Below, piece after piece: positions 6,363 to 25,544 of a DNA stretch of 64,000 nucleotides. Position 1 is the first letter of the stretch, and each line of letters opens with the position of its first letter. The notes below the pieces were generated by a model that saw only the letters and a list, made by a program, of their open reading frames with translations, was not told the DNA's origin and ran no database searches. The translations under genes and the position numbers were made by a program. The stretch lies in the sequence record KX397373.1. The stretch is one strand, 5' to 3'.

Positions 6363-6740
6363 ATGATTCACGCAGAAATGAAAGAACTGATTCAGAACAA
6401 CCTGGACGCTGGCCTGGTACTCTACGTTGTTCATCCTGAACTGAAACAAGAATGGTTGCAGGGTCAAATGACTGACCTGCGTTGGGCCGTACTGGACACC
6501 GATGGTCGCACTTCCATTACCGACATGGGGCGGATGCTACGCCAAACCGCACTTGAAGCAAATAAGTTGGTACAAGTGCGCACCACACAAAACGAACCAC
6601 ATATCCGCTTTGCCAATGAAGCCGATGTAGTGGTATTAGTTGGCTTCGCGGAAGAGAACGTACCGTTCTTCGGTGAGAACGTCATTATCTCGAAGTTCCG
6701 TACTGTTCAAGAAATTCCCCGTAAAGTGTTCCCGATTTGA
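6363..6740 (+). CDS. Hypothetical protein
   Basis: 125-aa ORF with AGGAG RBS. Confidence 0.75.
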   Translation: MIHAEMKELIQNNLDAGLVLYVVHPELKQEWLQGQMTDLRWAVLDTDGRTSITDMGRMLRQTALEANKLVQVRTTQNEPHIRFANEADVVVLVGFAEENVPFFGENVIISKFRTVQEIPRKVFPI

Positions 6741-7558
6741 AACGGGTCAAGATGTACGCGTTGTTGATGCTGGATGATTGGTTCCAGCACCAAACGACGA
6801 ACAAGAAAGCGGCGAAAATCGCGTACTTCGTCATGGGCAAAGTTATTAGTGAACTGCGTTGGGATCACTCGTCTTTCTTCGAGCAGTTACTGCGGGGATT
6901 GTGCCACGATTTCGACAACTGGGACTACAGCATTAAACGTAGCCTGTTGTTTGATGCTTGGTGGGAGGTCTCCGAAGAAAACGAATCGTGGTTTAAGCGC
7001 GATACCGAAGAAGCGAGTCGCATTATCACCAAAATGTTGTTCGACCCGTCTGACCCTCGGCAGTTGCGGATTCATAACCGCATGTACCAGATGGGTGAGA
7101 ACTGGTTGTGGGCCACGCAGGAAGTCGCTGCGGCTTTAGACAGTCCGGTTTCGCTTGCCTCCTACGAAGACCTACAAGCACACAACTTGTGGTTCGGAGG
7201 GGAGGAAGAAGAGTACGGCGATGCTGTTGTGGAGCTGTATCTCTATCCTGAGGATGAAGATTGGCCTGCACTCATTGCCAAGTACCCCACCGAAGACTAC
7301 GTCTGGTTGGTACGGGGCGTATTCTGGGAACCGGTGCTCGATGTGGTGTGCCACAAAGGGGTGACGATTCTCGACCGGTCAGTGATAGTGCAGCAGATGA
7401 TTAGGGATATCGGTTATGATGACGGTTTACAGTCAGTCTTTGCTCGAAGTTCAGAAATGGTTCGAGACCTGCGAGACAACATCGAGACGGGGAACTCTCT
7501 ATCTCCTGATAGCGGAACTGATGATCAACAGCACGCTGACGATAATCAGCAAAGTTGA
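6737..7558 (+). CDS. Hypothetical protein
   Basis: Acidic, Trp-rich ORF overlapping the previous stop (TTGA); ATG at 6752 is an alternative start. Confidence 0.7.
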   Translation: MKRVKMYALLMLDDWFQHQTTNKKAAKIAYFVMGKVISELRWDHSSFFEQLLRGLCHDFDNWDYSIKRSLLFDAWWEVSEENESWFKRDTEEASRIITKMLFDPSDPRQLRIHNRMYQMGENWLWATQEVAAALDSPVSLASYEDLQAHNLWFGGEEEEYGDAVVELYLYPEDEDWPALIAKYPTEDYVWLVRGVFWEPVLDVVCHKGVTILDRSVIVQQMIRDIGYDDGLQSVFARSSEMVRDLRDNIETGNSLSPDSGTDDQQHADDNQQS

Positions 7559-15689: not shown

Positions 15690-17002
15690 TGAAACTGAAT
15701 AACATTGACGGCATCACTAGCCAAATCGGTAACAAGGTGAACGGTGTCCAGTCAGCGGTTGGCAATACGGTGCAACGCGGTACGGATGCAGTAAACCGCG
15801 TACAGTCTACGGTGGACAATGTCGGGAAGGGTATCGAGTCAGCTCAAAACCTGTACCAGAACACGTTCGATAAGGCGGGGGAAACCTACGATAAGGTCGT
15901 GAACGGTGCAGGGTCGCTGAAAGAAAAACTCGGTAACCTCTTTGGCGGCAGTGACACTTCTTCGGTAGGTGGAACCAAAGCAGCCGGGTCTGCGCCCTCA
16001 GGGGCCTCACCCGGTCAGAAGATGCCCACGTTTGCCACGGATACGAAAGCTGCGCTGCCGGTACTCGATCCGCAAAAGCGTGATGTGTCAGAACCGTTTA
16101 AGCCGGTCAACAAAGCGGGCCTGTCGGCACTCAGCTACCTCAGTCCCGGTGGGGCAGGGAGTCTGTTGTCTAAAGGTTGGTCTACCTTAACGAACCTGCG
16201 CGACCAAGCGCTGAGTGCGGTAGGGACTGATTACGCTTCGGTGAAGAATCGTCTGGAACAAACCATGAACATTGCCGGGCAACTGGCAAAGCTTCCGGGT
16301 GAGGTTCAGCGAGAAATCAGTGGCTACGTCAACGAGTTTAACTCGGCGAAATACCAAGTCACCGCCATGGTGGACGATGTAACCCACACCTTTGATTCGT
16401 TCAAAGACCTGGGGGACTACCTGGCGATTGATAACGTGTTGCAAAGTTTTGGGGTAGGGAGCAGCAGCAATGGTTACAGCAACTCTTTCTCAAACCTGGA
16501 CATCAATACGTCATCGGCACTGATTTACGGTATCTCGACCAAGCTCAACACTTACGGCTTACCTGCGAAGATTGACCCAATGGTACAGGCCATCACTGAC
16601 CCGGTTGCGCAAGAAGCGTTGTACGGTGAATTGATGGTGCAAGCCTCCGCCACGGGGAACTTGGATTCGGTAGAGTATTACCTGCCGAAACTGAAACCGG
16701 GCCAGGGGCAGCAGTTGGCAGAGGATGTCATTAAGAACCTCATGGCCAATCTGCGGGTTGAACCGGGTATTGGGTTCCGCAGTTACGGTGTGCGTTTGTT
16801 GGCGTTGTTCGAAGCGTTAGACCCGAATTGGGACAAGTCCAAGATCAATCCGGGAATGACCGAACTGCGTCTGTACACTTACGCAGGCTCTAATGCGATT
16901 CAGGCATTGCTGACCACTGACCGCCGCATCTATGTGATTGCCGGGGGTAGCGTGCAGTATCAAACTGCTGACTCTCTGGTGAATGCGTATTTCGCCGTCT
17001 AA
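15686..17002 (+). CDS. Putative virion/tail-associated protein
   Basis: 438 aa; N-terminal 11-residue-periodic amphipathic segment and Gly/Ser linker; structural role is inference. Confidence 0.5.
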   Translation: MMKLNNIDGITSQIGNKVNGVQSAVGNTVQRGTDAVNRVQSTVDNVGKGIESAQNLYQNTFDKAGETYDKVVNGAGSLKEKLGNLFGGSDTSSVGGTKAAGSAPSGASPGQKMPTFATDTKAALPVLDPQKRDVSEPFKPVNKAGLSALSYLSPGGAGSLLSKGWSTLTNLRDQALSAVGTDYASVKNRLEQTMNIAGQLAKLPGEVQREISGYVNEFNSAKYQVTAMVDDVTHTFDSFKDLGDYLAIDNVLQSFGVGSSSNGYSNSFSNLDINTSSALIYGISTKLNTYGLPAKIDPMVQAITDPVAQEALYGELMVQASATGNLDSVEYYLPKLKPGQGQQLAEDVIKNLMANLRVEPGIGFRSYGVRLLALFEALDPNWDKSKINPGMTELRLYTYAGSNAIQALLTTDRRIYVIAGGSVQYQTADSLVNAYFAV

Positions 17003-17014
17003 CAGGTACCGTTT

Positions 17015-17893
17015 ATGACCAATGATGATAATCCTATTTTGCGTGCCACGCTTGAAACTGTACGCAAAGCAGATGTGGGTGTTAACAATGTAGCGGCAAT
17101 GTTCGGCTTCTCCTTAGACGGGGTAGTGTCGAAGATTGCGCCAGTGAACCACATCGCGCTCTCGCCGGATGAGAAGGATGTGTTTATTCGCTACCTTCGC
17201 AGTCTCGGCTATCGTTGTCACCTGAAAGACTTTATCCCGTCTACGGATGGGTTGAACCACTATAACATCTATTCCCAGGCCAGAACGCAGCTGGGTAAGA
17301 TGGCGAGTAACTTTTACTCGCAACCGGAAGGGAAATACTTCGATACCACCGATGGCCGGTTTTTGACGTTAGAAGGGTACTATCATTACCTGCGCATCCT
17401 GGACTACGCGCTTCACACTTATTGCCGTGACGTTGAACCCACGAAGTTGTTGGATCGCAACGACATGGCACGGGTAGCGATGCAGGAAATGCTCAGGAAG
17501 TACCCGGACATCCGCAAACTGGCGAAGTACGAGGGTGCCGATTGTATCCGTATCGGTCGTAACCTGAAAGCAGCCATCTATGGTGGGACAGATTACCGTC
17601 CTGGCGCATTCAGTCCCCTGTCAGCTTACCGTTTTATGACAGCAATGGTATTTAAGTTGCACACTTTAACTATTGATGGCGTGAGTATCGGTAATATCCT
17701 GTCTGCGCAGGTTACACATGGCATTCCACTTCTTCACTATTACGTGATGAATGGTCGCCAGATAACCCCGCCGCATTCGGATTGGTTGCCAGGTGTGGTC
17801 GAACAAATTGTGCAGTGCATTGATCCGTACGGCACAACGTTCAACCCCCACGCCGTTATCAGCCAGATAGGGAACGACGATGGGTCTCTTTGA
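17015..17893 (+). CDS. NADAR-like (T4 gp30.3-like) protein
   Basis: NIYS..RTQLGKMASNFY...FDTTDGRFLTLEGYYHYLR resembles the NADAR LSNF...DG..F..LEG(F/Y) signature. Confidence 0.5.
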   Translation: MTNDDNPILRATLETVRKADVGVNNVAAMFGFSLDGVVSKIAPVNHIALSPDEKDVFIRYLRSLGYRCHLKDFIPSTDGLNHYNIYSQARTQLGKMASNFYSQPEGKYFDTTDGRFLTLEGYYHYLRILDYALHTYCRDVEPTKLLDRNDMARVAMQEMLRKYPDIRKLAKYEGADCIRIGRNLKAAIYGGTDYRPGAFSPLSAYRFMTAMVFKLHTLTIDGVSIGNILSAQVTHGIPLLHYYVMNGRQITPPHSDWLPGVVEQIVQCIDPYGTTFNPHAVISQIGNDDGSL

Positions 17894-18539
17894 CACCTTA
17901 GCGAAACTCGATCAGCAGCAAGAAGCCGACGTCTTAAAAGTCGCCGGTGAATCGGTGCGGGTCGAGACCGAAAAAGAATACGTGATGTGGGTGAAGCCAA
18001 CCGAAGAAGGCTGGGCGTGGTTATTCGAGCAGCAAGCACAGGTCTACATGGATGTGCTGATGCCGATTGCCCGTGGGCGTCGTCGGGTACGTTTGCAGAG
18101 TGGCGGTAAAGCCGAACTCACTGTGAAACGTATGGCGGGTGAAGGCAAGATTGAGGAGAACTCAGACATTGGGTTCGGTGCAGGCTTGTCATTCTACGAA
18201 GACGGTCACTTAGCGCACTTGGTTCGCCGTATCCACATGGATGCCGGGGAGCTGAAAGCGCAAGGGGCTAAGCACTGGGACATCGACCTGTTCTACACCG
18301 TCACGGGTCACCCGGTGCTGGAAACCCAGGAAGACTTTGACGCACTGGTCGCTGACTTGCAAACCGCAACGTCATTCGGTCGCTGGGTGAAGGTGGAACT
18401 GGAAGTCGAACGTTTTGAAATCAACACGATTAAAGACGTTATCCCGTTCGGTGTGGCAGAAGCGATTCCTGGTGGGCCGAAAGACCCCGAGACACAGGAA
18501 ATGCTTCGTCACTACTGGGACAATGAAACCCGTATCTAA
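17880..18539 (+). CDS. CYTH (triphosphate tunnel metalloenzyme) family protein
   Basis: N-terminal ETEKEY (ExE-type motif), RVRL, ELTVK, WDIDLF, VELEV. Confidence 0.7.
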   Translation: MGLFDTLAKLDQQQEADVLKVAGESVRVETEKEYVMWVKPTEEGWAWLFEQQAQVYMDVLMPIARGRRRVRLQSGGKAELTVKRMAGEGKIEENSDIGFGAGLSFYEDGHLAHLVRRIHMDAGELKAQGAKHWDIDLFYTVTGHPVLETQEDFDALVADLQTATSFGRWVKVELEVERFEINTIKDVIPFGVAEAIPGGPKDPETQEMLRHYWDNETRI

Positions 18540-18545
18540 GTGGTT

Positions 18546-18578
18546 CCCTCTCCTTCGGGGGAGGGCTACTTTATTTTT
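18546..18578 (+). terminator. Intrinsic terminator
   Basis: CCCTCTCC-TTCG-GGGGAGGG followed by a T-rich tail. Confidence 0.8.
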
Positions 18579-18596
18579 ATCCTAAAGGAGTACAAG

Positions 18597-18974
18597 ATGG
18601 TTGTCGGACACTTTTTTAATCGCCACGGTTTAGTGTTTGTATCGGGTATCGCTGTAGAAGGTCGTCGTGTTCACACCATGAACCTGACGGACGAAGAGAA
18701 AGCGCATTGGGCGGAGGTGTTAGCACCGTTCAAAGACAAGAAGCTGGCGCTGGGTCAACGCATCACCTACGGTTCCAGTCCACGGGTGGCTTTCCACGGT
18801 CACAATGACGAAGGGGGTCAGGATGACTTAGCCATTATGGCCGGGGAAGAGGGTCGACGGTTGTCAGAGGTGCTGCTACAGTTTAAACCACCGATGTGCA
18901 ACGGGCCATACATTAACCTCGAAGGACATCCGGACGCTACCAGCATCGCTCACCAGGTGATGGTACTTCTATAA
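18597..18974 (+). CDS. Hypothetical protein
   Basis: AAGGAG RBS before ATG 18597. Confidence 0.7.
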   Translation: MVVGHFFNRHGLVFVSGIAVEGRRVHTMNLTDEEKAHWAEVLAPFKDKKLALGQRITYGSSPRVAFHGHNDEGGQDDLAIMAGEEGRRLSEVLLQFKPPMCNGPYINLEGHPDATSIAHQVMVLL

Positions 18975-19021
18975 TTTACAAAAGCGGGTGTAGTTATGTA
19001 AACACCCGCAAGGATACCCGA

Positions 19022-19450
19022 ATGATGAATAAGATTGCTTTTGAGAAAGGCACTGGCCTGATTGTTAATGAAGTCATTATCCCGAATACGGACAACGCTG
19101 CCTGGGAACACCTGGCGCTGCGTTTAAACGGTAAGAAGGTCTCTGTTACCTTAACCAACGAACTCGCACTCAACGGCAATCTGGCTAACGCTGGGCCGGA
19201 GTTTGCGGCGTTCAACGTACCCCATTCGACCGGCGTTTGTTTTTTGAAGAACGCGTACTTCGCAAGTCGAGTTTACAGCTGGAAACTACTGGCTGAACTG
19301 AACAAATCCGTTGGCCTGAACGCGAAGCAGGGTGTGCCGAACGACCACATTGCTAACCACGGTATCGTTATCGTGGTCTCTCGCGTTGCCGGTGAAGAAC
19401 TGGCCTTCTCTTTCTGTTACGCGTACGGAGCACAGGATGCAGCTGCCTAA
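19022..19450 (+). CDS. Hypothetical protein
   Basis: 142-aa ORF with AAGGA RBS. Confidence 0.7.
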   Translation: MMNKIAFEKGTGLIVNEVIIPNTDNAAWEHLALRLNGKKVSVTLTNELALNGNLANAGPEFAAFNVPHSTGVCFLKNAYFASRVYSWKLLAELNKSVGLNAKQGVPNDHIANHGIVIVVSRVAGEELAFSFCYAYGAQDAAA

Positions 19451-20348
19451 TGCCGAGATTCAAATCCACGCCGTAGACAGCTGGTATACCGACACAAAGG
19501 TGTACCAGTTCGGCAGCTACGAACAACAGCGTAGCAAACTGTATCGTTGCCTCGGTGAAATTGCCGAGGGGGTACAGAAAGACGATACCTTAAAAGTGGC
19601 AGCCGGTATCGGTCGGGTGCTGTGGACGTTCATCGGCCTTGTGCATTTCTCCAAGCAAGCTCACGATGTTCCCCTGCACAGCCAACTCGACCACTATATT
19701 CAGTTGAAGCTGAAAGCCACCAACAAACACGCCCAGCTTCATGCGCTGATGCACAACACCCTGGATCTGGTCTGGCAGACACCCGAAGACGGTGACTTCT
19801 GTTTGCACAGTTTCCTGAAAGCGTTTGGTGATTTCATGATGGGACTGAATACGTTGTGTAAAGCCACAGGGCTAGAGTTTGACCGGGTGGTGTACAACGG
19901 CCATTACGCACTCATTCGCACTCAGGGTGAGATGAACGAGCTGGGGATGTTTATTCCTGCGCCAGGCGATCTGGATGGTGATGTAATGGGCCAACCTCTG
20001 GTTAATGAGAAACTTCCTTCTGGTCAGCTCACCCACTTTTATATCGAAAGTGGGCTGAACGCCGCGGCTGCTAAAGCGTTCGTGCCGTACGTTCACACCC
20101 CGTTTGCTTCTCACAAGGTCGATGAGGTCAGTGATAAACTGGCGGAGGCATTGGAAGAACTGTTGGAGCGGCACATCTACAGTGATGATAAATGGCGACA
20201 TCTGACTTTCGAGCGGACGCCAAAGATTAACATCATGTACGAAAACGGCACCGTGACAGCCACGTACAACGATGACCTCAAGTTTATCATGAATACCCTA
20301 AAACAGGATAATTTGCACCATGAAACAATATCTGGACTTACTGCGTGA
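19437..20348 (+). CDS. Degenerate MazG-like protein (metal-binding acidic residues lost)
   Basis: Gapless ~63-aa alignment to the MazG core of 22754..23659, with EEDGE replaced by RCLGE and DGLGD by AGIGR; distal [10 protein letters not shown] matches GLLNADGIFI. Confidence 0.7.
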
Positions 20349-21237
20349 CGTTCGTGACAACGGGCACGAAAAAGCAGACCGTACGGGCACGGGCACCCTG
20401 TCGTTATTCGGCGCACAAATGCGCTTTGACCTGCAAAAAGGTTTCCCGCTGGTCACGACCAAAAAGGTTCACCTCCGCTCCATCATCCATGAGCTTCTGT
20501 GGTTCCTCATGGGCGATACCAACATCCAGTATCTGAAAGACAACAACGTCAGTATCTGGGATGAATGGGCGGATGAAGATGGTAATCTCGGCCCGGTGTA
20601 TGGAATGCAGTGGCGGGCATGGATGGGACCGGGTTACGAAACCATTGACCAGATCAGCAAGGTCATGGATCAACTGAAAAATGACCCGGACAACCGCCGC
20701 ATTATCGTCAGCGCCTGGAATGTGGCAGAGCTGGACAAGATGGCATTAGCGCCATGCCATGCGTTCTTCCAGTTCTATACGCGTGAGCTGTCGCTGGCAG
20801 AGCGTATGCACGCCGTGCGTAATCACCCGGACTTCGGTAAACAGTGGTTAGAAGCTGACCTGCGTTTCTCTGAGAACGAAGCATGGCTGGACAAGCATAA
20901 CTTCCCAACGCGTGTTCTGTCCTGTCAGCTTTATCAAAGATCGGCGGACATGTTCCTGGGTGTCCCGTTCAACATCGCTTCCTACGCTTTACTGATGCAC
21001 ATGTTTGCACAGCAAGCGAATATGTTAGTGGGTGATTTTGTCTGGACGGGTGGGGACGTGCATCTGTACTCCAACCACCTGGAGCAGGCAGATTTGCAGT
21101 TAACTCGCGAACCTCATCCGTTACCACAACTGCGGATTAAACGTCGTCCGGATTCTATCTTCGACTATAAGTTTGAAGATTTCGAAGTGGTCGGATACGA
21201 ATCGCATGACGCTATTAAGGCACCGGTGGCGATATGA
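20320..21237 (+). CDS. thyA: Thymidylate synthase
   Basis: [47 protein letters not shown]; very close to enterobacterial ThyA. Confidence 0.97.
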
Positions 21238-22031
21238 AGAACAAGCTCTTTGTTTTCTCGGATGCCTTTTACACCACCAACTACGATCAGTACAACCACG
21301 GCGTTGTTGCCGCGATTAATGAAGAAGATGCCCAGCGCTTAGTACCGACGGGTATCGATTTGATCGAAGTCGGTGAGACCGATGCGTATGACGTGTTGCT
21401 GTTTGCGGAAGGTGTACGTAACTGGCCTGAGCGCCACCGTTACACCAACCACACCATCAACTGTCCTGGCTGGAAAGTCATTGAAGGGGCAGATATCTCG
21501 GACTACGAGAAGAAGCTTGTGGAGTTAATGCAACTCCCACCGGACATGGACATCGTGTTCAGTAACTGGGGGAAGGTGCCAGAAGACAGTGAGCACGGTA
21601 AACCGCCTGCGGCTGGGCAATGGACAATAACCGCAACCTCTGGTGAACTCGGGGGCTCTGCACAAGTTCACTTTAACGGCTTGCCTTCTCTGGACGCTCT
21701 GCTTGAGCCTGCGGAACACACGGTCAGTTATACCTGGCAGGATACCGAAACCTTGCCGGTGACGATTGAGCATGTTCTGGCAGACGTGTTGAAGGTGGTG
21801 GGGCGAGAGTCTGAGTACCACGACTGGGCAGGAATGGCACGACAGCACTTCTATTCAGAAACGGCAGTGCTCGGTTGGGAAGAACTGACTGAGGAAATCG
21901 GTCAGTACAAGAAAACATGGTACCGTCACCCGGACTGGCAAACGCTGGTTCCAGAGATGGTGCGTAAAGAAGCCTCCAAACTCACCGTTATCACTGATGA
22001 AAACGGCAGAATGCGGATGGCGCAATACTAA
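21234..22031 (+). CDS. Hypothetical protein
   Basis: 265 aa, ATGA overlap; N-terminal module shared with 23687..24514. Confidence 0.75.
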
Positions 22032-22047
22032 CGAAGAGGTAATCAAA

Positions 22048-22527
22048 GTGTCTATGACTCCAATTAACTATAACTTGGTAGTGAAAGAACTTTCGAACGG
22101 TCTGGTTGCATTGGACAGTGACGAAGCCCAGAGCTTGGTGTTGCTCCCGCATGTAGAGCTGAGCGAATTCCGTACTATCCGCTACGGTGCTGGCCGTCAG
22201 AAAGGGGTGACTGAACACGCCATCAACATGGCTGCGCACCACAAAGGGTCGGTGCTTATCCTTGTCCATCATGAAGCGTTACGCAATGAAGCGATGCGTA
22301 AGTTCCATGCGAAGGCGTCGGGTGATGGGTGGTTAACTGTGCATTGCAGTTACCTGCCTGAGAACTGGAAACAGGCTACCGGCTCTGGACTCTCTGGTTA
22401 TGAGAAGTTCAGTCTGGCCATAGTCGATGAAGCCGGGTTCTTCTTCAACAAATTTAGCTTTGACAAAATCTACCGCAGTCTGGTCGATGTTGTGACGCCG
22501 GACGTGGTTATCCATCTCATCAATTAA
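22048..22527 (+). CDS. Small degenerate P-loop NTPase-like protein
   Basis: GRQKGVT (compare GRQxGKT) and AIVDEAG (Walker B-like); GAGG RBS before GTG 22048. Confidence 0.5.
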   Translation: MSMTPINYNLVVKELSNGLVALDSDEAQSLVLLPHVELSEFRTIRYGAGRQKGVTEHAINMAAHHKGSVLILVHHEALRNEAMRKFHAKASGDGWLTVHCSYLPENWKQATGSGLSGYEKFSLAIVDEAGFFFNKFSFDKIYRSLVDVVTPDVVIHLIN

Positions 22528-22538
22528 GAGAATACGCA

Positions 22539-22694
22539 ATGAGCAATAAAGAGCAGGTACAGGAATCACAGCTGGCAGCTGACCCAATGGACTTTGGTGA
22601 CATCCCAGGTCTTGACCCGGATGCCGGTGTTGTCGGTGGTGTTGATGCAGCTATCGAAGACGATGGTTGTGCTGGCGGTGCCTGCAAAATTTAA
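22539..22694 (+). CDS. 51-aa acidic peptide ending in an NrdA-like redox tail (DDGCAGGACKI)
   Basis: Hand translation: MSNKEQVQESQLAADPMDFGDIPGLDPDAGVVGGVDAAIEDDGCAGGACKI*. It fills the intergenic gap and is followed by a terminator; below the ORF-track length cutoff. Confidence 0.8.
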   Translation: MSNKEQVQESQLAADPMDFGDIPGLDPDAGVVGGVDAAIEDDGCAGGACKI

Positions 22695-22700
22695 CAAATA

Positions 22701-22734
22701 GGTGTGTCCATATGGACACACCACTTTATTTTTT
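22701..22734 (+). terminator. Intrinsic terminator after the peptide gene
   Basis: Perfect GGTGTGTCCA/TGGACACACC inverted repeat followed by ACTTTATTTTTT. Confidence 0.8.
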
Positions 22735-22753
22735 ACCCAAAAGGAAAATTATC

Positions 22754-23659
22754 ATGGGCGATCGTTTTGTTATTCAGATTCCGTACAACGTTATTGTAAA
22801 CCCGAATGCGTATTTAGAGCAGATTAACACCCTGCTGGCAGGCTTCTGTCATCGCCAGCACGCGACCCCGTGGTCGTTTGAAGCGCTGTACTCACTGAGC
22901 GTTAACAGTGAGACCGGCAGTACCCGCGTTGAAGGGAAGGCGAAAACCGAAGACGGTCGTCTGGAAATCAACGATTTCGAAATGCCGTGGCAACTGAAAG
23001 ATGTTGAGTTCAACGGCAAAGTTAACCATCCGCGTTATATCCCACTCTTCTCTGTTGGCCAGTGTATTGACAATGTACTGGGCTGGTCTGCTGCGCGTGG
23101 TATTCTGGAAAACGGCAAATGGGACACCCAGGTGACCAAGCTGTATGAAGAAGACGGTGAAGCGGCGACCGGTATCAGCAAATCGAAAGAGCGCCTTATC
23201 ATGGACGGTCTGGGTGATGCTCTGGTGGTGCTGGTTAACGTGATGGAACTGTCGGGTATCGGTGCAGGTAAATTACGCGAGTGTTTTGTTGACGCCACGC
23301 TGGCACGCAACAACAGCAACAACAAAGTCAATAGCTACGGCCCACACCGCCTGTTCCACTGGATGCGTATGTGTCTGACTATCGGTAATCAGGTGCTGTA
23401 CACTGCGTACGATACCTACCTCGAGAACGACGAGAACCGTGGTAAGAAGTTCTCTATTGAGCTGGGTGAAACCAACGCTTCCCGTCACGCCGAATCATTC
23501 ATTGGTCACGCCACCCATGCGGTGCACGCGATGTTGCTGCTCGCCGATCACTACAACATGCCTATCGAACATTGCTTCTCCCTGGCGTGGGATGAAATCA
23601 AAGACCGTAAAGGGCTCTTGAACGCCGACGGCATCTTCATTAAAGAAGCTGACGCCTAA
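22754..23659 (+). CDS. mazG: MazG-like NTP pyrophosphohydrolase with extra N-terminal domain
   Basis: KLYEEDGE, DGLGDALVVL, CFSLAWDEIKDRKG...GIFIKE; AAGGA RBS before ATG 22754. Confidence 0.85.
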   Translation: MGDRFVIQIPYNVIVNPNAYLEQINTLLAGFCHRQHATPWSFEALYSLSVNSETGSTRVEGKAKTEDGRLEINDFEMPWQLKDVEFNGKVNHPRYIPLFSVGQCIDNVLGWSAARGILENGKWDTQVTKLYEEDGEAATGISKSKERLIMDGLGDALVVLVNVMELSGIGAGKLRECFVDATLARNNSNNKVNSYGPHRLFHWMRMCLTIGNQVLYTAYDTYLENDENRGKKFSIELGETNASRHAESFIGHATHAVHAMLLLADHYNMPIEHCFSLAWDEIKDRKGLLNADGIFIKEADA

Positions 23660-23686
23660 TATAAAAAAGACAGAGGTACTATTCGC

Positions 23687-24514
23687 ATGAAAATCTTCTT
23701 AGTCACTGATGAGTTCATTGCAGGAACGGTTAATCCGTCGTTTCGCGCGGTCGTTATTGCGGCGGATGAATCCGGTGCCCGTTGGGTGGTAGCCCGGCAG
23801 AAGGCGGGGCCGGGGATGGAAAATGTCCGTCAAGCCTGCGCCATCTCGTTAGGTGAAACCGAAGTCGGGGAAGAAACCGTTCTGTCCTACACCACCGGTA
23901 TCGGGACTGGGAGCATGGTGAAAACCCATCCCCCGATTCCACTGGAGGCAGACGAGTTTTACCGGGTGAGTGTAGAAACAGTACGTGACCCCTTAGCGCC
24001 ACTCCCTCAACACCCCGACCGTTTAGGCGATAATCAGGTCTCGTACTGGTTCTCTCAGCACACCGGAATTATGATGCGTTTAACCGAACGGGAAACTGTT
24101 CTGCCAAACCTGACCGGTGAAAAAGGCGTGTACTCTGAGAAAGAAAGTTACGCGCAATACTGGCGGCTGTCGCACAACGCAAAACGTCCCGAATTCTCAC
24201 CAACTGAATCGTTGAACGTTGAGCATTATTTGGCCCGCCCGGAATCCGCCAATATCTATACCTTGGCTGAAACACACAGCATCATCTCCCGGCTTTCTCA
24301 GGCACCGTATCATGCCGAAGCGCCAAGAGAGTTGTTGTCCTACCTGTGGGATAACTTCGTTTCCTACAAAGAGGTGGGGTCGGACACGCTGGTAAAAGAC
24401 CTGCTGTTGTTCAATGGGCAGCAACTATGGTTCCAGGCAGAGAAAGCGCGTGACTGGTTTATAACAGTACCGCAATGTATCACGCTGGTACGCAACCTTA
24501 ACACGGATGCTTAA
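23687..24514 (+). CDS. Hypothetical protein
   Basis: 275 aa, GAGG RBS; N-terminal VVIAADE..AR...LGET module as in 21234..22031. Confidence 0.75.
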   Translation: MKIFLVTDEFIAGTVNPSFRAVVIAADESGARWVVARQKAGPGMENVRQACAISLGETEVGEETVLSYTTGIGTGSMVKTHPPIPLEADEFYRVSVETVRDPLAPLPQHPDRLGDNQVSYWFSQHTGIMMRLTERETVLPNLTGEKGVYSEKESYAQYWRLSHNAKRPEFSPTESLNVEHYLARPESANIYTLAETHSIISRLSQAPYHAEAPRELLSYLWDNFVSYKEVGSDTLVKDLLLFNGQQLWFQAEKARDWFITVPQCITLVRNLNTDA

Positions 24515-24516
24515 CC

Positions 24517-24954
24517 ATGGAAAAACGACTGCACACTTTCGATTACAACGGACGTGAGCAGTTGTTTGTAAACGGTGAGCTGTGGGAAGACCACGGTCTC
24601 ACCCTGCAACAACTGTGGAAGTTAAAGTTACTGTCAAGTCGACACGGCGGGTTAGAGTTCGTCTTTACCGACCAACCTATTCCTGAGCAACTGTGGACTG
24701 ACCAACGTGACTTGCTGTTCTGGGAGGTTCGTGAGTCGTTCCTGAAGAAGGTGTTGTACACGCATAGTTGGCGTGGAGGATGCCATAGTCCAGCGAATGT
24801 ATTGAAACTCTCTGAACGGTACGGCACCGAGATGGCGTACATCCAGACATGGCCGAAGGAACTGGATGAAAACAGTTTGGTGGTCTGGTGGTCAGCCCCG
24901 CAAGGTAGCGATCGGGCTACCGTCCGAATCGTGTTCGAACACGACTACAAATAA
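24517..24954 (+). CDS. Hypothetical protein
   Basis: 145-aa ORF coupled to the upstream gene. Confidence 0.7.
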   Translation: MEKRLHTFDYNGREQLFVNGELWEDHGLTLQQLWKLKLLSSRHGGLEFVFTDQPIPEQLWTDQRDLLFWEVRESFLKKVLYTHSWRGGCHSPANVLKLSERYGTEMAYIQTWPKELDENSLVVWWSAPQGSDRATVRIVFEHDYK

Positions 24955-24963
24955 AATAAAAGT

Positions 24964-24998
24964 CGAGTAGCCCATTGGGCTACTCGCTTTCTTTTTTT
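24964..24998. terminator. Terminator between convergent units
   Basis: CGAGTAGCCC-ATT-GGGCTACTCG with T-tract on the right and A-tract on the left. Confidence 0.8.
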
Positions 24999-25001
24999 GT
25001 C

Positions 25002-25544
25002 TTAAGATGCAGACGTGTCGTAAACCAGGCCATCTAACTGGGTGTCAGTGACCAGTTTACTGATGTCCGAACCGTCGGCCGGTACTTCCGTGAGGTACAC
25101 TTCAAGCCTACCGATCCAGGCAAAGGATTTGCCGTTGAACCGTAAGCTGTGTTTGTCACCGGACACTGCTTCCGTGGGATAGATTTCATCCTCGGTGATG
25201 ATAAGGTTATACTTATCCCGAATCAACGGCAACAGTCCAGCAGCGGTAGTCACCCCCGTTCCGTCCACGGAGATAACAATGCCGTCAAACAAGTGATCCA
25301 TAAACAAACGACGATAAGTTACCGTGAACTTGCCGAACGTCCCTTTATCCAGGATACCGTTCACGTCCATCGTGGTGTTTAACCGCGTGTAGTACGTGGG
25401 GTCATCCTCACCGGGCCCAGCGAGATTAGAAGGGGTACCGAATGCCAGCATATCCGACGTAATCCCTTTTGTCGTAAAGCCGGGGTTCTTGGCCACGATT
25501 AATTCGTAGACCAACTCTTTTGCGCTTTTACCAAACAGACTCAT
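25002..25544 (-). CDS. Putative virion structural protein
   Basis: 180 aa, GAGG RBS, last gene of the tail-tip operon. Confidence 0.55.
   Translation of the reverse strand: MSLFGKSAKELVYELIVAKNPGFTTKGITSDMLAFGTPSNLAGPGEDDPTYYTRLNTTMDVNGILDKGTFGKFTVTYRRLFMDHLFDGIVISVDGTGVTTAAGLLPLIRDKYNLIITEDEIYPTEAVSGDKHSLRFNGKSFAWIGRLEVYLTEVPADGSDISKLVTDTQLDGLVYDTSAS

Follow-up and report, generated by a model that had tools for sequence, protein, structure and literature searches.

The window analysed here is a stretch of 64,000 nucleotides from sequence record KX397373.1 (243,953 bp), which comes from Erwinia phage vB_EamM_Stratton (Erskinevirus), a jumbo phage of the SPN3US/phiEaH2 group; bases 19000–24000 of the window are 100% identical to that record. 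Our subject is the gene gp251, which lies directly upstream of the thymidylate synthase gene thyA, and its relationship to gp256, a downstream gene annotated as a MazG-type nucleotide pyrophosphohydrolase. An earlier note on this DNA had read gp251 as a catalytically dead paralog of MazG that lies near an intact copy. The features of gp251 and its paralog, given as positions in the window, include an N-terminal domain with the predicted fold of the all-alpha nucleoside triphosphate pyrophosphatases (NTP-PPases):

19437–20348, + strand: coding sequence of gp251 (STRATTON_251), 303 residues plus stop, uninterrupted; "hypothetical protein" in GenBank; phrog_10269
19427–19430, + strand: ribosome-binding site GGAG, 6 nucleotides 5' of the gp251 ATG
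19437–19967, + strand: N-terminal MazG-like domain (N-domain), residues 1–177, predicted all-alpha NTP-PPase fold (AlphaFold2 model, Foldseek against BFVD, hhalign)
19536–19580, + strand: degenerate motif 1, residues 34–48 (K-L-Y-R-C-L-G-E...G-V-Q-K), aligned to K-L-Y-E-E-D-G-E...K of gp256, with R37 and C38 in place of two Glu metal ligands
19602–19616, + strand: degenerate motif 2, residues 56–60 (A-G-I-G-R), aligned to D-G-L-G-D of gp256
19881–19952, + strand: last helix and beta-hairpin, residues 149–172; R150 and N154 invariant in the gp251 family, G164, N167, G170 and F172 common to gp256
19968–20015, + strand: linker, residues 178–193, with a predicted local distance difference test score (pLDDT) below 50 in the full-length model
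20016–20312, + strand: C-terminal domain (C-domain), approximately residues 194–292, predicted to fold into a pair of long helices, then a beta-hairpin and one more helix; without a match to known families; a variable, separable module
22754–23659, + strand: gp256 (STRATTON_256), the intact MazG paralog, "putative mazG nucleotide pyrophosphohydrolase"; phrog_7855

The open reading frame of gp251 is intact and has a ribosome-binding site, as the earlier note had read it, and the start codon is backed by the N-termini of 17 aligned homologs. The first 14 nucleotides of the gene overlap the 3' end of gp250, the last 29 overlap the start of thyA, and the profile of phrog_10269, whose function is unassigned, matches gp251 over nearly its full length (residues 4–292 against positions 2–298/299, E 6.1e-133). 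The second copy that had been placed nearby is likewise intact and keeps its motif, with the metal-ligand codons of gp256 at 23147–23161 (E132–E136) and 23204–23218 (D151–D155).

We found that gp251 and gp256 are homologous over the whole MazG-like domain. BLASTP aligned residues 10–72 of gp251 with residues 105–167 of gp256 (27% identity, E 8e-6) and reproduced the gapless alignment that had first drawn attention to the pair. Family profiles, built from alignments of 17 gp251 homologs and 15 gp256 homologs and compared with hhalign, matched with a probability of 97.4% and an E-value of 1.6e-11 over 178 columns (gp251 2–181, gp256 97–300), so the MazG fold holds up in a profile search; the same comparison recovered the matching distal segment that had been described, with gp251 132–177 aligned to gp256 255–300. 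MazG families of the PHROG collection (phrog_7855, phrog_715 and phrog_1992) match gp251 at E-values from 4.5e-8 to 2.8e-4. A profile search also returned P0093, an intact MazG protein of 178 residues that retains EE.GE and ED..GD. Because P0093 matches both the MazG family phrog_1992 (1.5e-35) and, over its whole length, phrog_10269 (5.6e-12), it forms a bridge between the two families. Sequence homology to bona fide members, by hhalign, by PHROG and through P0093, thus places gp251 in the MazG/HisE superfamily. Identities below 20% are too low for a tree that would date the duplication. No NCBIfam family matched gp250, gp251, gp253, gp256 or gp257, and none of the sequence profiles (of gp251, of the N-domain and C-domain taken singly, and of gp256) found a meaningful match in the PDB; the sole low E-value in these PDB searches was for the C-domain against FD15, with no matched stretch above threshold.

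The full-length AlphaFold model of gp251 has a mean pLDDT of 81 and a disordered linker at residues 178–193. When the N-domain was modelled by itself (AlphaFold2, 25-sequence alignment), the model reached a pLDDT of 95.4 and a predicted template-modelling (TM) score (pTM) of 0.90 and consists of seven helices followed by a C-terminal beta-hairpin. The alignments for structure prediction and for the search of representative sequences described below were drawn from window and database proteins only. Significant structural matches came only from BFVD, a database of predicted viral structures: after the protein's own orthologs, the best Foldseek match of the N-domain there is the gp256 ortholog of phage Wellington (E 4.3e-8, TM 0.79), which superposes with a root-mean-square deviation of 3.3 Å over 188 columns, and next come several "NTP-PPase-like" phage proteins (E ~1e-5, TM ~0.7). 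Like gp251, gp256 and its orthologs have the "long" MazG domain architecture: an N-terminal Trp helix comes first, followed by the two helices that bear the motifs, a helical insertion, a final helix and the beta-hairpin; gp256 differs in that it carries an N-terminal extension of ~100 residues, whereas gp251 carries a C-terminal domain of ~110 residues. Profile homology, the bridging P0093 and the structure comparison together bear out the paralogy that the earlier note had claimed.

To place the residues of the pocket, we used MazZ of cyanophage S-2L as the reference. In MazZ, E34, E35, E38, E50 and D53 hold three catalytic Mn ions, the contacts to the ligand include W15 and K31, and R83 is near the beta-phosphate (PMC8342488). 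The equivalent positions are as follows:

MazZ E34, metal ligand: E132 in gp256, R37 in gp251; R in at least 80% of the gp251 family
MazZ E35, metal ligand: E133 in gp256, C38 in gp251; C, Y, H or T in the gp251 family
MazZ E38, metal ligand: E136 in gp256, E41 in gp251; variable in the gp251 family (E, D, T, R, K, Q or M)
MazZ E50, metal ligand: D151 in gp256, A56 in gp251; A or S in the gp251 family (K or R in a few)
MazZ D53, metal ligand: D155 in gp256, R60 in gp251; R, N or K in the gp251 family
MazZ W15, ligand contact: W111 in gp256, W16 in gp251; conserved in the gp251 family
MazZ K31, ligand contact: K129 in gp256, K34 in gp251; conserved in the gp251 family
MazZ R83, near the beta-phosphate: R285 in gp256, T162 in gp251; K or T in the gp251 family

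Four of the five acidic motif residues are therefore replaced in gp251 (R37, C38, A56 and R60) and E41 is kept, exactly as had been noticed. In gp256, E132, E133, E136, D151 and D155 are invariant in 15 of 15 sequences, and so are D134, D280, E281 and D284, where gp251 has L39, Y157, A158 and R161; of these nine invariant acidic residues gp251 retains at most one, the variable E41. The loss is family-wide across 17 + 24 sequences, in which the five ligand sites are almost never acidic. The residues that replaced the acidic ones are themselves conserved in the gp251 family (R37, L39, R150 and N154), and R150 and N154 are invariants specific to it. Other positions are common to both families (W16, G26, Q31, K34, Y36, G40, G45, K48, G59, G164, N167, G170 and F172), including the conserved C-terminal hairpin G-x-x-N-x-x-G-x-F. 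This residue comparison indicates that the canonical metal site is gone throughout the gp251 family while the other pocket framework persists. Thus, the N-terminal 177 residues of gp251 very probably form a MazG/HisE-fold domain without the carboxylates that hold the metal, and this identity is the firmest part of our explanation. The metal-binding motif EExxE...(E/D)xx(x)D, which defines a competent MazG-type NTP-PPase, is missing from gp251; the protein should therefore not be filed as a nucleotide pyrophosphohydrolase, and we infer from the residues that it probably no longer hydrolyses nucleoside triphosphates (NTPs).

We found gp251 by tblastn in 53 phage records, all of them SPN3US-like jumbo phages of Erwinia, Salmonella, Escherichia and Proteus, and the match covered at least 80% of gp251 in 43 of the 53. 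All 15 orthologs that were fetched are intact (15/15), across four genera and down to 23% identity. An exhaustive profile search of 1.84 billion representatives returned 24 clusters only, so the gp251 family is restricted to one clade, and a search of IMG/VR for related loci returned phiEaH2-like and Asesino-like contigs only. Pairwise ratios of nonsynonymous to synonymous substitution (dN/dS) range from 0.06 to 0.31 for the whole gene, from 0.02 to 0.13 for the N-domain and from 0.03 to 0.32 for the C-domain. These ratios show that purifying selection on gp251 is strong and that the gene is being kept, not lost; the N-domain values and the intact orthologs agree with the earlier suggestion that the gene is no product of simple decay. 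As an enzyme homolog that lacks the catalytic residues and is under purifying selection, gp251 is, on the comparisons above, a pseudoenzyme in the operational sense of the term. In the record of Salmonella phage pSal-SNUABM-04 (L012:6459–7343) the depositors note an "NTP-PPase_SsMazG domain (cd11535)" on the gp251 ortholog, which all other records call hypothetical, so the assignment of a MazG fold is not entirely new; we found no prior description of the loss of the catalytic residues in gp251, of its family-wide conservation or of the domain architecture.

The C-domain (approximately residues 194–292) is predicted with a pLDDT of ~80 in the full-length model, and among Pfam, PHROG and PDB it matched no family except its own PHROG. 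A weak match to Rep3_N WH1 (E 0.003–0.013) was below threshold and was rejected. In phages Kwan and Wellington the C-domain is absent (the gp251 ortholog has 191 residues), and in Caitlin (224 residues) a different short tail replaces it. In a metagenomic SPN3US-like lineage, a gene for the N-domain (181 residues) is followed directly by a separate gene for the C-domain (102 residues), both upstream of thyA (L019:4454–5309, L021:5001–5856); because this split occurs on at least five contigs from different samples, it is real and not a sequencing error. Phages Huxley and Machina are 97–100% identical over 13.8 kb, and identity drops to ~50% across the C-domain. The "new C-terminal domain" of the earlier note is real, but it is a separable and variable module.

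The neighbourhood of gp251 contains the following further features, of which the hairpins at 18546–18565 and 22701–22722 come from a consensus scan only:

19025–19450, + strand: gp250, conserved upstream neighbour, function unassigned; phrog_9744
20320–21237, + strand: thyA, thymidylate synthase, the next gene after gp251 in relatives
18546–18565, + strand: terminator-like hairpin upstream of the gp249–gp255 block
22701–22722, + strand: terminator-like hairpin between gp255 and gp256, with a 9-bp stem and a T-run
24964–24986: terminator-like hairpin, bidirectional, between converging gene blocks

The three hairpins are strong, with stems of 8–10 bp followed by T-runs, and their positions suggest transcription units gp249–gp255 and gp256–gp258. 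Given the hairpin at 22701–22722, gp251 and thyA would be in a different predicted transcription unit from gp256. The order gp250 – gp251 – thyA ... MazG is identical in all 15 fetched relatives, in which the stop of gp251 and the start of thyA overlap or abut, and gp251 and gp256 co-occur in 15 of 15 genomes examined. By alignment, ThyA retains the catalytic Cys-His as well as the Asn responsible for dUMP specificity. The phage ThyA proteins, which range from 305 to 407 residues, have lineage-variable insertions at three sites (after WADE, QWRxW and FQFYTRE); even phages that are nearly identical differ in these insertions, whose variation is not tied to that of gp251. In one SPN3US-like relative (GCA_020289985.1, ABCXJB010000007.1; L021:5856–7163), a group I intron divides thyA into two open reading frames, the arrangement known from T4 td; the intron matches Rfam RF00028 at 6584–6816 (64.8 bits, E 1e-15). 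An Rfam scan of Stratton window positions 17000–25500 gave no match to any family at gathering score.

The gp256 gene is mosaic, with 52% identity between phages ChrisDB and pEa_SNUABM_9 where neighbouring genes are 89–96% identical, and its ortholog in Kwan and Wellington has 460 residues, with a C-terminal extension of ~160 residues (L010:8943–10322). Downstream of the two MazG-type genes lie gp253 (21234–22031, with thyA between it and gp251) and gp257 (23687–24514), whose N-terminal ~60 residues are weakly similar (BLASTP E 0.049; family profiles 52% probability, E 1.4e-4). We considered a segmental duplication of a MazG-like gene together with its downstream gene (gp251/gp253 and gp256/gp257) and rejected it, since the similarity is weak and N-terminal only and there is none between gp254 and gp258; the likeness of gp253 to gp257 may be the trace of an old segmental duplication.

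What does the phage use this protein for? Our best explanation overall, to which we give somewhat better than an even chance, is that gp251 binds nucleotide without hydrolysing it and serves as an adaptor or regulator in the phage deoxynucleoside triphosphate (dNTP)/thymidylate module. With the MazG framework and the nucleotide-contact positions retained, gp251 would bind nucleotide without hydrolysis, and Arg or Lys at the former metal sites (R37; R, K or N at position 60) could contact phosphates directly. The protein would then work as a non-catalytic adaptor or regulator of the cytoplasmic dNTP/thymidylate module, and the variable C-domain would supply a protein–protein contact. The assignment to the thymidylate module in particular is tentative, and we regard it as possible rather than probable.

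Known systems offer partial parallels. S-2L MazZ (PDB 7ODY) resembles gp251 in having a helical bundle with two extra C-terminal beta-strands and equivalent Trp and Lys contacts, and the MazZ gene adjoins the gene of the enzyme that uses the MazZ product, as gp251 adjoins thyA. In contrast, MazZ has ~100 residues, is tetrameric and has its metal ligands, whereas in gp251 a helical segment is inserted and the ligand positions read R, C, E, A and R; the Foldseek match between gp251 and 7ody is weak (E 2.6, target-normalised TM 0.54). A degenerate MazG-like domain that is retained beside an active one has a precedent in Escherichia coli MazG (PDB 3CRA), which reportedly (work of Lee et al. from 2008) has tandem MazG domains, the two not equivalent. 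3CRA is among the best-ranked PDB matches of the gp251 N-domain model and has the top E-value (probability 0.75–0.82), though the match is not significant. The two domains of E. coli MazG are fused in one chain, in contrast to gp251 and gp256, which are separate genes 2.4 kb apart. As an analogy only, viruses have reused a nucleotide hydrolase fold for a non-catalytic or signalling role elsewhere. The herpesvirus dUTPase-related proteins are pseudoenzymes derived from dUTPase, of an unrelated trimeric beta fold; the signalling dUTPases (Duts) of staphylococcal phages (PDB 5MYD) are still active enzymes, unlike what the sequence of gp251 implies. The dimeric all-alpha Dut 5myd is a weak structural match to gp251 (query-normalised TM 0.28, target-normalised TM 0.46).

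Several observations weigh against the adaptor or regulator that we favour. To begin with the fold, gp251 has no match to Pfam MazG (PF03819), and by the curated gathering threshold it falls outside the family. Among 25 gp251-family members this model matched only the intact P0093-type sequence (1.4e-4), and gp256 scored 14.6 bits, under the cut-off of 22. Foldseek searches of the PDB with the full-length and N-domain models gave nothing significant (best E 0.09–0.23), although the highest probabilities fell on the MazG entries 5ie9, 2yxh, 3cra and 2q5z; the MazG-HisE helical bundle is seen in the AlphaFold2 model and the BFVD comparison, the PDB search by itself being not significant. For nucleotide binding, positional equivalence is the one ground on which we infer it, and in MazZ and canonical MazG a second chain completes the pocket (PMC8342488). 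The literature that we searched held no biochemical data for any gp251-family member, and neither SPN3US gp228 nor any inactive MazG protein from a phage was the subject of a paper there. As for the thymidylate module, gene order is conserved region-wide in SPN3US-like phages, and because the whole region is syntenic the adjacency of thyA is weak evidence of a functional link. Two near-isogenic pairs of phages looked suggestive of co-variation between the C-domain and the ThyA insertions, but the full pairwise table did not support it (Spearman 0.07), and between Huxley and pSal-SNUABM-04 the C-domain is 98% identical while the ThyA insertions are 56% identical. The link between gp251 and ThyA is weak on both counts, synteny and the absence of co-variation.

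Among the alternatives, the likeliest is a counter-defence sponge or decoy, in which the dead MazG domain would sequester, uncleaved, a nucleotide that serves as signal or alarmone (for example (p)ppGpp or some cyclic oligonucleotide) and the exchangeable C-domain would adapt it to different hosts; we consider it unlikely. Phage nucleotide sponges are known, and Atd1, a MazG-like phage protein, depletes (p)ppGpp and thereby works against TIR-based abortive infection (bioRxiv 10.1101/2022.06.09.495361). Compared by description, Atd1 is like gp251 a phage protein of the MazG family and has a role beyond house-cleaning, but it is active and keeps its twin catalytic motifs, which gp251 lacks. The genomes hint indirectly at such a role in that gp251 is a sharply bounded island of divergence between phages that are otherwise 97–100% identical: EC001 and SPN3US differ over the entire gene (38–59% nucleotide identity, with flanking genes 95–100% identical), Huxley and Machina over the C-domain only, and the architecture is fluid (N-domain only, split or fused). 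Yet the N-domain, at the dN/dS values given above, is under purifying and not diversifying selection; mosaicism is not specific to gp251, since close relatives have exchanged gp256 and the ThyA insertions as well; and the family is confined to one phage clade.

Slightly less likely still is that gp251 is a regulatory pseudo-subunit that joins gp256 in a hetero-oligomer, by way of the helical-bundle interface common to both, and adjusts how active or how specific gp256 is. Enzyme–pseudoenzyme pairs are common, canonical MazG pockets span the dimer interface, and the two proteins are homologous across the whole domain and occur together in all 15 genomes. We found no sign of co-evolution between them, however. 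EC001 and SPN3US have gp256 proteins that are 98% identical and gp251 N-domains that are 48% identical, which weakens the idea of a hetero-oligomer, and ChrisDB and pEa_SNUABM_9 (SNU9) show the reverse, with 52% for gp256 and 89% for the gp251 N-domain; the evolutionary histories of the two proteins are uncoupled. In addition, a strong hairpin parts their predicted transcription units, and the N-domain, modelled as a monomer, gives a confident bundle that is complete in itself.

That gp251 is still an enzyme, with a new catalytic arrangement (e.g. E44, D149, R150 and N154) on the MazG scaffold and possibly a substrate other than an NTP, seems quite improbable. The near-invariant polar residues that are absent from gp256 (E44 at ~85%, D149 at ~90%, R150 and N154 at 100%) would fit such an arrangement, but gp251 has at most two acidic residues near the former site as compared to the nine invariant ones of gp256, and to our knowledge every superfamily member that has been characterised relies on the EExxE...ExxD metal site. 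A decaying, functionless duplicate or an annotation artefact is hardly credible: gp251 is annotated merely as a hypothetical protein, the tblastn match in SEGD1 covers only 61% of it and overlaps two annotated genes, and the hits in some SPFM records are fragmented, but the idea is refuted by the conservation data, with the gene intact in every fetched genome down to distant relatives, dN/dS far below 1, the substituted positions conserved and a confident fold prediction.

A bolder reading would make gp251 the founding member of a group of MazG-derived, metal-free nucleotide receptors. Here the former Mg site would have turned into a phosphate pocket lined by Arg and Lys that captures a specific nucleotide (a dNTP-pool signal, (p)ppGpp or a host immune messenger) without hydrolysis, the interchangeable C-module would relay or target the binding, and the protein, be it sponge or sensor, would thus protect or regulate the nucleotide supply in nucleus-forming jumbo phages. 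We offer this as a speculation that is unlikely to hold.

Standard Pfam annotation misses both MazG-type genes of SPN3US-like phages, and the present analysis names a protein that is called hypothetical in more than 50 phage genomes and puts forward a hypothesis that can be tested, namely that it binds nucleotide but does not hydrolyse it. The phages that carry the gp251 family include SPN3US, a genetic model, and phages of Erwinia amylovora that are considered for biocontrol of fire blight. Phage MazG-like enzymes are increasingly recognised for reshaping host nucleotide pools and for counter-defence, and the discovery of a specific ligand or partner would add to the interest of gp251. With catalysis lost and selection still preserving it across a jumbo-phage clade, such a paralog would offer a clear-cut case of a viral pseudoenzyme that derives from the MazG fold.

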